From assembly GCA_002269645.1 (NCBI GenBank), contig NIVC01003546.1:28009-92008 (forward strand): DNA of 64,000 nt. The letters are read 5' to 3'. How positions within the stretch are numbered: the stretch's first letter is position 1; each line of letters begins with the position of its first letter. Source of the stretch: Macrostomum lignano. Taxonomy: Eukaryota. The translations under genes were made by a program, and so were the position numbers. This document shows, one piece after another, positions 39,813 through 45,157 of this stretch. The notes under the pieces are model-generated. The model worked only from the letters and a program-made list of their open reading frames with translations. It was not told the DNA's origin and made no database searches.

Positions 39813-42800
39813 TCAAATAAACAAAGCAAGATGGCTCAAGGACTTGTCAGGAATGTCTTCCCAAGGAATGATCCGGACTCGATACTTCAAATAAATCCGG
39901 TGCAACAGCGGACAGTACTCTCGTATCTGGCTGCCGAACTCTGGGGTGTCGTCTTTGAAGTTAGCGATAATTTTTACTTTCCCACGTGTACTCGAGTCTT
40001 CCAACAGACTATTGAGAAAGGGCAAGAGGCCGCCACCGTTTGAAATCAGGTTCTCCGTCAGCATAATAAAATATCTTTGCGCAGAGGTTAAGTCCTCCTG
40101 AAAGAAGTTGTGAAGTTTCCAAGAAATGCTTTACAGTCAACAAGCACTCGTAATAAATACGAGTATCGTAGATTAAAATCATACAGAACCAGCGTCTTAC
40201 CGGCACCGCTTCGAAGGTGGTCTCGTCAACCCGGATGAAATTAGCAGCTGCTTCGTAATTGGGAGAGCTCAGTTGGTCCAGATCAGCCGAGAGGCCAATC
40301 AGCAGCGCCGTGGGACGCACACTGCATATTGAGGGGCTCCTGTTGCCGCCTTCTGCACGCGACAGACGCGCGGTCTCCGGGATGTCTTCGTCGAATGATT
40401 CGTGTGAATCAGAATCGGAAGTTGATTCTTGCTGCTGTTGGTGCTGCTGCAGCTGCTGGTCTCGGGGACTGGAACTGACAGTTTGGGCGCATCTCTTTTC
40501 TGTTCATCCGCAGCCTTCCTCAACTCCCTTCGCTCCATCATTCTCCAACCATCCGCTCCAGTCTCCAACCATCCGCTCTAGTCTCCATTCATCCGCTTTA
40601 TTCTCCAATCATCCGCTTCATTCTCCAATCATCCGCTCTAGTCTCCAATCATCCGCTCCATTCTCCAACCATCCGCTCCATTCTCCAACCATCCGCTCCA
40701 GTCTCCAACCATCCGCTCCAGTCTCCAATCATCCGCTCCAGTCTCCAACCATCCGCTCCAGTCTCCAATCATCCGCTCCATTCTCCAACCATCCGCTCCA
40801 GTCTCCAATCATCCGCTCCAGTCTCCAACCATCCGCTCCAGTCTCCAATCATCCGCTCCAGTCTCCAACCATCCGCTCCAGTCTCCAATCATCCGCTCCA
40901 GTCTCCAATCATCCGCTCCAGTCTCCAACCATCCGCTCCAGTCTCCAATCATCCGCTCCAGTCTCCAATCATCCGCTCTAGTCTCCAATCATCCGCTCCA
41001 TTCTCCAACCATCCGCTCCATTCTCCAACCATCCGCTCCAGTCTCCAACCATCCGCTCCAGTCTCCAATCATCCGCTCCAGTCTCCAACCATCCGCTCCA
41101 GTCTCCAATCATCCGCTCCATTCTCCAACCATCCGCTCCAGTCTCCAATCATCCGCTCCAGTCTCCAATAATAGACTTCATTCTCCAATCATCCTCTTCA
41201 TTCTCCAATCATCCTCTCCATTCTCCAATCATCCGCTCTAGTCTCCAATCATCCGCTCTATTCTCCAATCATCCGCTCTAGTCTCCAATCATCCGCTCTA
41301 TTCTCCAATCATCCGCTCTAGTCTCCAATCATCCGCTCTATTCTCCAATCATCCGCTCCCTTCGCAATTTATATTTTGGGTTACCATAGTTACAAATCGA
41401 TCGCTCGTACCTTGAAATGGGCTGCTGTCGCTCTTCCAGAAGTTGCTGGGCATCCAGCGGGAGGGTGGCAAGAGGACTCAGCTCTATATTTTGTCCGTTT
41501 ATCCGCTCGTACGTTTGATTTCCATAATTTTGAGACATCAGCGTCTCCCGGCTGTTGCCCTGGTTTCGGCGTTGGCCTTGACTGCCCGAGGCGGCGGTGC
41601 TGTTCGTAACGGCCGAGGCGTTGTTGGAGCCTCTGAGACGTCTGTACGCTTGGAACAGGCTATGGATGGCACAGCGAGGGCAGCGGAGGCGCATGAACAA
41701 AGGCAAATCAATAAATCATTCCATCATACATACACGACTAGCTGAATGTTGGCTTAGTGAATTTGACTCAGTAACTATGTGACACTGCAAGGACTCGGGA
41801 TGATACAGTTTGAGCATGTGGCTGTGACATTTCGAATATGTACATGCAGTACTTTAAGAATGTAACGCTGAAGATTCGAGTTTGAAACACTGAGGAGGTG
41901 GCAATTTGAGGATGTGACACTTTGAGGATGTGGCACTTTGAGGATGTGGTACTTGAGGATGTGGCACTTTGAGGATGTGGCACTTTGAGGATGTGGCACC
42001 CTCATATTCTGACCTTTTCCGATATCGAAATCCCAAGGCAGCCGCAATGATGCAACCACCAACAAAGCACAGCAGACCAACGGTGCCACCTGCTGACAGT
42101 CCACCTCCATTATTTTCTGAGCTGCTACGCTGAACCACGGAGGAATCGCCCGAATTTTCATCGGATTTAAAACCCAATTCAATCTTAGGCGGCTGGCGAT
42201 CATCAGCTGGGAGGCTGCTGATGTCGGGCGGAGGCTGCCTGCGGCAATAGGCCTGGGCGGAGGCCAACAAGCTAGCCGAGTAGGTTCGGAGCAGCTGGCG
42301 TGAAAAGATTGGTTGAGATTCAGGATTTTTTCCTGTAATAGTTACTTCATTTGTTTTTCTATACCTACTTTAGCTACCGTAAACTTGAGAATAGTTCAAA
42401 ATGATCCAAACGTCCTAAAAATTATTTTTCCAATTTGGTATTCTATTCCCTATCACTAAATCCTTAATCCTAAAAAATCTTTAACCACATTTATCGAATC
42501 TTGAATCAAAATCATCGAATCTCTAATCCCAATTTTCGAATCTCTAATCCCAACTATCGAATCTCTAATCCTAATTATCAAATCTCTAATCCCAACTATC
42601 GAATCTCTAATCCCAATTATCGAATCTCTAATCCTAATTATCAAATCTTTAATCCCAACTATCGAATCGCTAATCCCAACTATCGAATCTCTAATCCCAA
42701 TTATCGAATCTCTAATCCTAATTATCAAATCTTTAATCCCAACTATCGAATCGCTAATCCCAACTATCGAATCTCTAATCCTAATTATCAAATCTTTAAT

Positions 42801-45157
42801 CCCAATTATCGAATCGCTAATCCCAATTATCGAATCTCTAATCCTAATTATCAAATCTTTAATCCCAACTATCGAATCTCTAATCCCAATCACTGAATCT
42901 TTAATCCCAATCACCGAATCCCTAATCCCTAATCCCTAATCCCAATCACCGAATCCCTAATCCCTAATCCCAATCACCGAATCCCTAATCCCTAATCCCT
43001 AATCCCAATCACCGAATCCCTAATCCCTAATCCCAATCACCGAATCCCTAATCCCATTTATCCAACGCTAACCTTTTTCCTCTTCTTCCCAACGAGCTGC
43101 GCCGCCCGAGCCGGGAACGCTGGCGGCGGCCCGTCAAAACCGGCTCGCTGCTTCATCACGCGCAGCTCCATCGAGTCCAGCTCCAGCTCGGCCAGCGCCG
43201 GCGTCCAACAGATGAAGCTGAACGCGCCGGCCACGCTGGACAGCCGGTTGCCGGACAGGTCGAGCCGGCGCAGGTTGGCCAGTCGCGTCATTCTGGCGCC
43301 GCTCACGTGACTGATGCGGTTGCCGTTCAGGCCCAGGTGGGTCAGCGAGTCCGGCAGGCCGCGCGGCACCTCGGTCAGCTTGTTGTCGGCCAGGTCCAGC
43401 GACTGCAGCTTGGAGAGGCCCATCACCTGCGGTTGGTTGGGGACGGATTGAGCCGTTGATTACAGATGTAAATTGAGCCAGTGTGGGTAGCTTATTAAGA
43501 ATTTAATTAATTATTTCATTAGTTATTTAGTTGGTTCGTTAGTTAGTTAGTTAGTTAGTTAGTTAGTTAGTTAGTTAGTTAGTTAGTTAGTTAGCTAGTT
43601 AGTTAGTTAGTTAGTTAGTTAGTTAGTTAGTTAGTTAGTTAGTTAGTTAGTTAGTTAGTTAGTTAGTTAGTTAGTTAGTTAGTTAGTTAGTTAGTTAGTT
43701 AGTTAGTTAGTTAGTTAGTTAGTTAAATAGTTATTTAGTTGGTTATTTAGTTAGCTAGTTAGTTAGTTAGTTAGTTAGTCAGCAGACTCAGCACCCAGCT
43801 CAGCACTCATTAGACGCGGTCTGAAATACTTTACAGCAACGCTCAACACCTACTGCTGTAAGTAGGATCGGACAGTTACGGACATGATTTGCTTACCTGA
43901 TAATCGAAGTTGGTGAGGCCGCATGCGTCCAACTGAAGCTGCTCCATGCTTTTGGTGGCTTGGCCAAAGGTTACTGGGCCCAGGGTTAGCGGCTTGCCGT
44001 GAGCGTTGGAGCACGTGACCTGAAATTAATGAATTATTATCCTGATAAATGTATATCGTGTACTTCTTCTGCTCGTTGAATTTCAAGTGATTTCAACAAA
44101 TTTCTTGCAAGTTTCAAGTTTTTTTAGAAAAACCCACCTGCAGGCTACGCAAAGTCGCCAAACCGCCCCGCAGGTCACCCGGTCGAAGGCTCGCCAAGGC
44201 AACCTGATGAAGTCGCAGCCAGCGGAGATTGCGAAGCCTCGCTAGGCAGTTCAGCATCGGCTTCGTTGACAACCGGTTGCCGGACAGGTCCAGGTGTTGC
44301 AGGCTGTCCCTCACCGGGTCCAGGGCGTTCAAGTCCAGCCTGGTCAGCGGACAGGCGGCCAGTTTGAGGACCCGCAGCCGGCCGCCGCCAGCCAGAGCCT
44401 CCAGGTCGCCGGTGCGCAGCTCAGTCAGCCGGGAGTTCCCAGACAGAGTGAGGCTGTGCAGGCTGGCGCACTCCGAGTAGCCGGTAGGCAGCCTCAGGCT
44501 GGCGATGTCGTTGGCGGCCAAGTTGACCGATTTCAGCCGAGGCAGCCGGTCGCAGGGCAGGTCTGGCAGGCTGGCGAACTGGTTCTGCGCCAGCGTCAGG
44601 TCCTGAAGGCTGCTCAGAGGGCTGAGCGCGCCGGCAATCAGGCTGGTCAGCTCGTTATTGGTGAGGTCCAGGTGCTGCAGACTCCTGGCTTGGCTCAGAG
44701 CGTATTGGCGAATGTTAGCGATGCCGCAGCCGACCAGCTCGAGGCGGGTGACGCCAGGAAGCGGCACCGAGCGCAGGTCGCGAAGTATGTTGCCGTTGAG
44801 GCGCACCACCGTCACGCCGGCTGGCGGGTCGGCCGGCACTTTGACAAGACCGCGTCGTTGGCAGTCCAGCGTCAGCGTCCTCTTCCTGCCGGCGCCGCTG
44901 ACGAGTCTGCAGGCGCGCCACTGCTCTGGCAGGTCGGATTCACTTGCAGTGTCGCTTCGGGTTCCCGCCGACTTGTGGACTGCTGCAGCCGGTGCCGCCG
45001 CCCGATCGGCAGAGTCGCTTTTTTCAATACCGGACTTCAACCTGCTGCTGCCAGCGTCGGCCCCGAGAGAGTCGGCTAAGCATTCAGCAGTGCCAGTTAA
45101 CAAGAATAGGAGCAGCAGCAGCAGCAGAGGCAGCTCTACCGTCTTCTTAGTTGGCAT
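39813..45157 (-). CDS. LRR-transmembrane receptor with divergent TIR/SEFIR-like cytoplasmic domain (Toll-like architecture), 7 exons, ~861 aa
   Basis: Exons 45157-44138, 44019-43897, 43426-43073, 42294-42014, 41659-41411, 40474-40201, 40097-39813 total 2586 nt. All are GT-AG with matching phases 0,0,0,2,2,0. The protein has a signal peptide, an LRRNT (C...LDCQRRGLVKVP), about 15 LxxLxLxxN/C repeats, a TM (GGTVGLLCFVGGCIIAAALGF-RYRK), a low-complexity linker and an alternating beta/alpha C-terminal domain. The LRR-TM call is firm; the TIR call is moderate. Confidence 0.85.
40540..41358 (+). repeat. 20-bp minisatellite (ATCCGCTCCAGTCTCCAACC)n
   Basis: About 40 units in intron 40475-41410 of the LRR receptor. 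Confidence 0.95.
41880..42000 (+). repeat. 16-bp minisatellite (GAGGATGTGGCACTTT)n
   Basis: About 7 units next to the donor at 42013. Confidence 0.88.
42485..43055 (+). repeat. 21-bp (ATCCCAACTATCGAATCTCTA)n grading into (AATCCCTAATCCCAATCACCG)-type telomere-like units
   Basis: Direct reading; intronic. Confidence 0.9.
43520..43780 (+). repeat. (TTAG)n microsatellite
   Basis: Direct reading; intronic. Confidence 0.95.

Follow-up and report, generated by a model that had tools for sequence, protein, structure and literature searches.

A predicted leucine-rich-repeat membrane protein of Macrostomum lignano with a putative orphan cytoplasmic domain

Flatworms are the textbook case of animals in which parts of the Toll pathway have been kept and no Toll-like receptor (TLR) is found. 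The protein considered here is encoded on the minus strand, at positions 45157-39813, of a 64,000-nucleotide stretch of DNA from Macrostomum lignano (assembly GCA_002269645.1, contig NIVC01003546.1, positions 28,009 to 92,008 of the forward strand), which is referred to below as the window and from whose first letter all coordinates are counted. A first-pass annotation, made from the letters of this DNA, had proposed that the gene encodes an overlooked and highly derived TLR-like receptor. TLRs are delimited as proteins that combine leucine-rich repeats (LRRs), a transmembrane (TM) segment and a TIR domain, next to which a category of LRR-only TLR-like proteins is used; zero TLRs are listed for the genome of M. 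lignano, and LRR-only TLR-like proteins are reported in flatworms that lack TLRs (PMC8609888). Planarians have been reported to possess TIR-only proteins, MyD88 and SARM (PMC7958881). The statement in the annotation that comparative surveys report no flatworm TLR therefore holds, M. lignano included (PMC8609888, PMC7958881).

In its layout the M. lignano protein resembles Toll and the TLRs (Drosophila Tollo and Toll-6/7, vertebrate TLRs): type I topology, a signal peptide, an LRR ectodomain and, beyond a single TM helix, a globular domain of ~130 residues in the cytoplasm. There is, in addition, a weak likeness in two strands, betaC (xRRxIxVLSxNF in TLRs, AQRYFIMLTENL here) and betaE (TYLEW and RIIPW). 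It differs from these receptors in having no TIR that a curated model recognises, no box 1, no BB-loop Pro-Gly, no box 3 FW and no membrane-adjacent LRRCT; in placing a disordered linker of 135 residues between TM helix and domain, where TLRs have about 20-40 residues between the TM helix and the TIR; and in that no orthologue was found outside Macrostomum. LRR-only TLR-like proteins of the Hydra HyLRR-2 type and vertebrate CD180/RP105 likewise display a TLR-resembling LRR ectodomain at the membrane with no recognisable TIR, but their tails are short, whereas the M. lignano protein carries a conserved cytoplasmic domain of ~130 residues.

Our preferred reading, to which we give a probability of roughly 0.55, is that the gene encodes a Macrostomum-restricted, single-pass type I LRR membrane protein with an orphan cytoplasmic domain. 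On present evidence it is an LRR receptor or adhesion protein and not a demonstrable TLR; because the cytoplasmic domain is an orphan, the term LRR-only TLR-like applies, the protein having an LRR ectodomain and a predicted membrane anchor and no recognisable TIR. Measured against TLRs proper, the extracellular LRRs and the single TM helix are present, and the TIR of a curated model, the sequence boxes and the LRRCT cysteine cluster are absent. The sequence had already been deposited and the architecture class was known; what is new is the orphan domain, with the possibility that it descends from a TIR, and the unusual point is the presence of a conserved orphan domain in the cytoplasm on a protein of the LRR-only type.

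The C-terminal domain comprises 132 residues (PTALLIG...LALFI), in which five short hydrophobic runs alternate with amphipathic stretches. When 1.84 billion representative proteins were searched exhaustively with phmmer, its sole match was the Macrostomum paralogue, and a word-indexed search of 5.8 billion proteins returned none. A scan of the 153-residue C-terminal segment against 24,736 Pfam models gave nothing at E<=10; this includes TIR (PF01582), TIR_2 (PF13676) and SEFIR (PF08357), the models in which support for the TIR proposal was to be sought, and the missing PF08357 match also sets the protein apart from SEFIR receptors of the IL-17R/Act1 type. Neither PADLOC, which holds many models of divergent bacterial TIRs, nor NCBIfam matched the domain at E<=10. 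Since with 24,736 models any match whose per-model P exceeds ~4e-4 goes unreported, such library scans exclude an ordinary TIR and not a very diverged one. No relative was found by phmmer among the sequences of the PDB, where a phage portal protein at E 0.12 was judged a chance match, and the 64-kb window contains no second copy of the domain.

The full-length protein has one close relative, the M. lignano UniProt entry A0A1I8GD08 (91% identity), whose 90% cluster consists of three M. lignano entries, A0A1I8GD08, A0A1I8IMJ0 and A0A1I8HY75. Because 580 of 582 residues are identical, the gene is identified as the locus of A0A1I8IMJ0, and the earlier guess of a Macrostomum-type flatworm was right. 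A0A1I8IMJ0 (582 residues) ends in the linker after QRRN and is thus without the C-terminal domain; A0A1I8HY75 and A0A1I8GD08 represent a paralogue, and in both of them exons 5, 6 and 7 are joined exactly as in our model. A recent genome duplication is known in M. lignano, and the paralogue is consistent with it. The description of the receptor as overlooked is therefore half true: it had not been recognised as TLR-like, but its sequence was already in UniProt. All three entries bear the name 'PPM-type phosphatase domain-containing protein'. A PP2C identity was rejected, as the full protein has no PP2C match in Pfam at E<=10; on this ground, and because the 582-residue entry carries the same name without the C-terminal domain, the name is judged spurious, and it looks like an automatic mis-annotation.

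The gene model consists of seven exons, all with GT-AG borders and compatible phases, which give a single open reading frame (ORF) of 861 residues with one terminal stop. These are the exons that had previously been joined in frame, including the acceptor at 40474. They are listed here in the order of transcription, with a slash marking each exon border.

Exon 1, 44138..45157, minus strand: residues 1-340, translation starting at 45157; signal peptide, an A/S-rich stretch ahead of the repeats, the partial LRRNT and LRRs 1-9; donor CAG/gtgggt; Pfam matches to LRR_8 and LRRNT; from residue 40 onward 100% identical to A0A1I8IMJ0.
Exon 2, 43897..44019, minus strand: residues 341-381; LRRs 10-11; borders tttcag/GTC and CAG/gtaagc, phase 0.
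Exon 3, 43073..43426, minus strand: residues 382-499; LRRs 12-15, then an LRRCT-less region ending in KKRKK; borders gcag/GTG and AAG/gttagc.
Exon 4, 42014..42294, minus strand: residues 500-593; extracellular stalk and predicted TM helix (~42028-42084), then RYRK.
Exon 5, 41411..41659, minus strand: opening part of the cytoplasmic linker, rich in S/Q/R/N, with YERI (YxxPhi).
Exon 6, 40201..40474, minus strand: Q-rich, acidic part of the linker (ESTSDSDSHESFDEDIPE) and the opening 38 residues of the C-terminal domain; borders tgtcag/T and CCG/gtaaga.
Domain part of exon 6, ~40201-40314, minus strand: PTALLIGLSAD...FEAVP.
Exon 7, 39813..40097, minus strand: last 94 residues of the C-terminal domain (EDLTSAQRYFIMLTENL...RIIPWEDIPDKSLSHLALFI); stop codon 39813-39815; border tttcag/GAG, phase 0.

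A plain list of ORFs conceals this structure, the locus appearing as a 347-residue ORF with an ATG start (44114-45157) followed by several shorter ones. The C-terminal domain, split over exons 6 and 7, falls into the separate ORFs 40009-40320 and 39813-40064, so it was rightly described as hidden in two unlinked fragments. Support for the junctions comes from the deposited M. lignano models: the exon 1-2 junction (SLQ/VTCSNA) is found in A0A1I8GD08, A0A1I8IMJ0 and A0A1I8HY75, the exon 2-3 (DYQ/VMG) and exon 3-4 (KKRKK/LLR) junctions occur among these models, and the exon 5-6 (PIS/SSSP) and exon 6-7 (EAVP/EDLT) junctions are the same in A0A1I8GD08 and A0A1I8HY75. Together, the deposited models thus contain junctions 1-2, 2-3, 3-4, 5-6 and 6-7 as modelled.

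Between exons 4 and 5 there is a choice of splice sites. For exon 5, two AG acceptors are available in frame, 18 nucleotides from each other, at 41659 and 41641 on the minus strand; the latter is used in the deposited M. lignano proteins (RYRK-R-RLRGS) and gives an 855-residue product, which is the one that matches A0A1I8IMJ0 at 580/582 residues, and the upstream acceptor adds SLFQAY. Exon 4 in turn contains an internal in-frame GT donor after 42071 (42071/42070), which, when joined to 41641, removes the TM helix (GLL/RLRGS). The paralogue entry A0A1I8GD08 has the same TM-less junction that this donor would give, which suggests either that a TM-less, secreted isoform may exist or that the same artefact of gene modelling has recurred.

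GC content at third codon positions (GC3) is 0.54-0.91 in the exons, and the GC content of the introns is 0.29-0.52; for exon 7 the values are 0.56 (GC3) versus 0.36 in the flanking intron. The introns are largely made of tandem repeats. The arrays that dominate the gene's introns and its 3' flank lie at 43519-43779, 42476-43062, 40542-41359 and 39488-39796, with units of TTAG x65, a 21-mer x28, a 20-mer x41 and an 81-mer x3.8.

The predicted protein is of single-pass type I topology, as judged from hydropathy. Its N-terminus, MPTKKTVELPLLLLLLLFLLTGTAEC, has the hydropathy peak of a typical signal peptide (about residues 1-25, 45083-45157), and a second peak at residues 570-588 (GTVGLLCFVGGCIIAAALGF; 2.24 at residue 570), followed by RYRK, is the predicted TM helix. 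The Pfam scan of the protein returned LRR families only (LRR_8 E 3.3e-30, LRR_4 E 4e-20), and 15 LRR cores of the generic LxxLxLxxN type can be counted between residues 115 and 459. On the C-terminal side, an LRRCT is missing: there is no Pfam match and no cysteine cluster, only two cysteines (residues 454 and 516) lying between the last LRR and the TM helix. The architecture first drawn for the protein, which ran from signal peptide through LRRs, TM helix and linker to a C-terminal domain, is thus right, and the estimate of about 15 LRRs was accurate; the LRRNT that it included was found as well, but only in part (about residues 83-112, E 0.039, under the gathering score). The 570-residue ectodomain (exons 1-4, residues 1-570) contains zero N-x-S/T sequons, where ~3 would be expected by chance. 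A sequon-free ectodomain is unusual for a surface LRR receptor.

The cytoplasmic linker that follows is 135 residues long and of low complexity (S 16%, Q 13%, R 11%), with two recognisable motifs, YERI (YxxPhi) in exon 5 and the acidic cluster in exon 6. Ahead of YERI, which both copies keep, exon 5 (about 41500-41530) reads NQTY here versus NPTY (NPxY) in the paralogue. Identity between the two copies varies by region, from 99% in the C-terminal domain (109/110 residues, with A0A1I8HY75) through 97% in the LRRs, 91% in the linker and 77% in the stalk to 73% in the TM helix. Because identity is 99% in the C-terminal domain but 77% in the stalk and 91% in the linker, the domain appears to be constrained, which suggests a functional module. 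A mechanism can be sketched: the LRR solenoid would bind an extracellular ligand or partner, ligand-driven clustering could then assemble the cytoplasmic domains into a protein-docking module, and the acidic cluster and YxxPhi motif of the linker may serve sorting or endocytosis.

Several points speak against our interpretation. Given how alike the paralogues are, the argument from conservation carries little statistical weight, and the ligand and function of the protein are pure inference. Moreover, a weak match to TIR in the expected register is reproducible (P about 0.003-0.012), so that the description 'orphan, not TIR' could be wrong. The match was obtained with a hidden Markov model (HMM) built from the cytoplasmic tails of 28 Toll/TLR proteins from the full-length search, in which the TIR regions were located by hydropathy and alignment and to which the aligned tails were trimmed. 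With hmmsearch --max, the domain scores 3.9 bits (P 0.0026) against this profile, residues 54-103 being aligned to alphaB-betaC-alphaC-betaD.

These results speak for the strongest rival explanation, according to which the protein is a derived TLR and its C-terminal 132 residues are a highly diverged TIR of five beta-alpha units, with alphaA and alphaE shortened. The protein would then be a degenerate descendant of the ancestral spiralian TLR that has lost boxes 1 and 3 and the proline of the BB loop, and it would signal by homotypic TIR-like contacts or act as a decoy. The succession of LRR ectodomain, TM helix, linker and globular domain fits a TLR, and the core of the alignment pairs AQRYFIMLTENL in the domain with asrrvilvlsenf in the TIR HMM. 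Only one of 1000 shuffled sequences scored as high, placing the domain second among 1001 sequences, as did two of 824 windows of real non-TIR proteins. In hhalign the same register was found over 38 columns with P 0.0095.

The calibration places the domain between accepted TIRs and unrelated folds; its control and decoy sequences were typed by hand, which detracts from its value. With hmmsearch --max the TIRs of MyD88 and IL-1R1 reach 46-63 bits, that of SARM1 14.4 bits and that of plant RPS4 9.3 bits, compared with the 3.9 bits of the M. lignano domain, and the best of eight decoys has P 0.029. In hhalign, RPS4 has P 0.0036 and the best decoy P 0.09, the domain lying between the two. A home-made alignment, global over the profile, gave the domain z values of 3.3-3.95 across three gap settings, similar to SARM1 and RPS4 (2.6-4.3), with at most 1.9 for the eight decoys (CheY, Spo0F, flavodoxin, Ras, DHFR, thioredoxin, T4 lysozyme and adenylate kinase). 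Of the 120 possible arrangements of the five units, the native one scores best, and the TYLEW(E/P)D end of betaE is matched by RIIPWED.

Against a derived TLR stand the thinness of the signal and its behaviour under variation. The hhalign probability is 4.3%, hhalign in global mode found no match to the TIR profile, and in one gap setting of the global alignment z 3.9 was also attained by one of 25 decoy windows taken from LRRs. When the HMM was broadened with five diverse TIRs typed by hand, the score fell to 1.7 bits (P 0.012), a level equalled by 29 of 2000 shuffled sequences and by 10 of the 824 windows from real proteins. The N-terminal third of the domain aligns ambiguously to TIR, and alphaE with box 3 is missing. 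All of the profile statistics draw on the same few dozen residues, namely those that prompted the TIR hypothesis in the first place. The empty Pfam TIR, TIR_2, SEFIR and PADLOC searches point in the same direction, as weak evidence given the display limit of P ~4e-4.

Direct reading of the C-terminal domain reveals none of the canonical elements, that is, no box 1 (F/Y)DAFISY, no box 2 RDxxPG with the BB-loop Pro-Gly and no box 3 FW. Aligned to TIR, the domain has VD at the RD position, lacks a YDA-type box 1, and has the FW helix deleted. The first-pass annotation had itself conceded that these boxes and the LRRCT were absent or degenerate, as they are. Nor does any Glu of the domain align at the position of the catalytic Glu of enzymatic TIRs, for which reason NADase activity, were the domain a TIR, is unlikely.

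Structure prediction, which was to be combined with Foldseek as a check on the TIR fold, is equivocal. An AlphaFold2 model from the single sequence (predicted local distance difference test, pLDDT, 60.5; predicted TM-score, pTM, 0.55) has the order beta-alpha-beta-(loop)-beta-alpha-beta-alpha-beta-alpha, as expected for TIR. When the same model was compared with the PDB by Foldseek, no hit passed E<=0.001, TM-scores stayed below 0.3 throughout, and neither a TIR nor a flavodoxin-like fold was among the results. A second model, computed with an alignment of three near-identical sequences, was worse (pLDDT 47.6) and all-helical, in disagreement with the first. The strand-helix order of a TIR is thus present in the better of two low-confidence models and a Foldseek match to TIR is not; because there is no alignment depth and the models are too poor, the failure to model as a TIR says little.

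Taken as a whole, the resemblance of the domain to TIR appears real but lies in the twilight zone; it lends the TIR hypothesis some weight and is too weak to call the protein a TLR. The order and register of TIR units proposed at the outset find an echo in the weak similarity (P about 0.003-0.012), and the TIR identity itself is not supported, given that Pfam, PADLOC, NCBIfam and the PDB hold no match, that no homologue was found outside Macrostomum among 1.84 billion representative proteins and that hhalign assigns 4.3%. A new-fold or orphan domain is more likely than a cryptic TIR. That the domain is a genuine, extremely diverged TIR, which would make the protein the first LRR-TM-TIR receptor in flatworms, is in our estimation less likely than not, though the consequences would be considerable: the picture of TLR loss in flatworms would change, surveys based on domain models would be seen to undercount such receptors, and a transgenic flatworm model would offer a tractable one. 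If the fold is new, the domain would be a Macrostomum-specific signalling or docking module on an LRR receptor, which is of narrower interest.

A further alternative, and an improbable one as a separate account, holds that the protein has no part in immunity and is a cell-adhesion or guidance molecule like Capricious/Tartan, FLRT or LRRTM, its tail serving mainly trafficking and cytoskeletal docking. The ectodomain matches generic LRR proteins (chaoptin, Tollo, podocan and slit) at 25-30% identity and is not closer to Toll than to chaoptin, slit and podocan; the YxxPhi motif and acidic cluster of the tail, and the NPxY of the paralogue, would suit such a role. Chaoptin is anchored by glycosylphosphatidylinositol, and podocan and slit are secreted. 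The LRR-TM adhesion and guidance proteins (chaoptin, Capricious/Tartan, FLRT, LRRTM and podocan/slit modules) share with our protein LRRs of the generic type and give, after the paralogue, the best ectodomain scores (E 1e-33 to 1e-25, 25-30% identity), but none has the cytoplasmic domain. The proposal is moreover a functional sub-case of the orphan-domain reading and not a structural alternative to it, and no result separates the two.

It is, finally, very improbable that the last two exons lie outside the LRR-TM transcript or are not translated in frame and that the 'domain' is an accident of joined ORF fragments: our junctions were read from sequence alone, the entry for the exact locus stops short in the linker and the two paralogue models are fragments with the same start and end residues, but both of these join exons 5-6-7 exactly as here, all borders are GT-AG and in phase, the stretch is conserved as protein far above the stalk (99% versus 77%), GC3 of the exons exceeds the GC of the flanking introns, and the frame is open over 94 + 38 residues to a single stop.

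The neighbourhood of the gene is rich in repeats, with about 40 tandem arrays in the 64-kb window and long spurious ORFs as a result. On the same strand, 3.5 kb downstream of the LRR gene, an intact 246-residue ORF (35538-36278, minus strand) begins with a signal-like sequence and contains a domain of the C-type lectin family (Pfam Lectin_C, E 1e-5); no record of it turned up when its exact sequence was looked up. A 379-residue ORF at 49775-50914 (minus strand) matches the homeodomain in two stretches (Pfam Homeodomain, E 5e-12). On the plus strand, three ORF pieces at 19045-26616 match positions 4-110, 108-216 and 245-370 of PF00999 (Na+/H+ exchanger) and are one multi-exon gene with repeat-filled introns. 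At 1990-2976 (plus strand), Pkinase exon fragments (E 4e-23) share a single ORF because the frame continues through an ACACACC microsatellite, and an artificial HTPHTT-rich stretch results.

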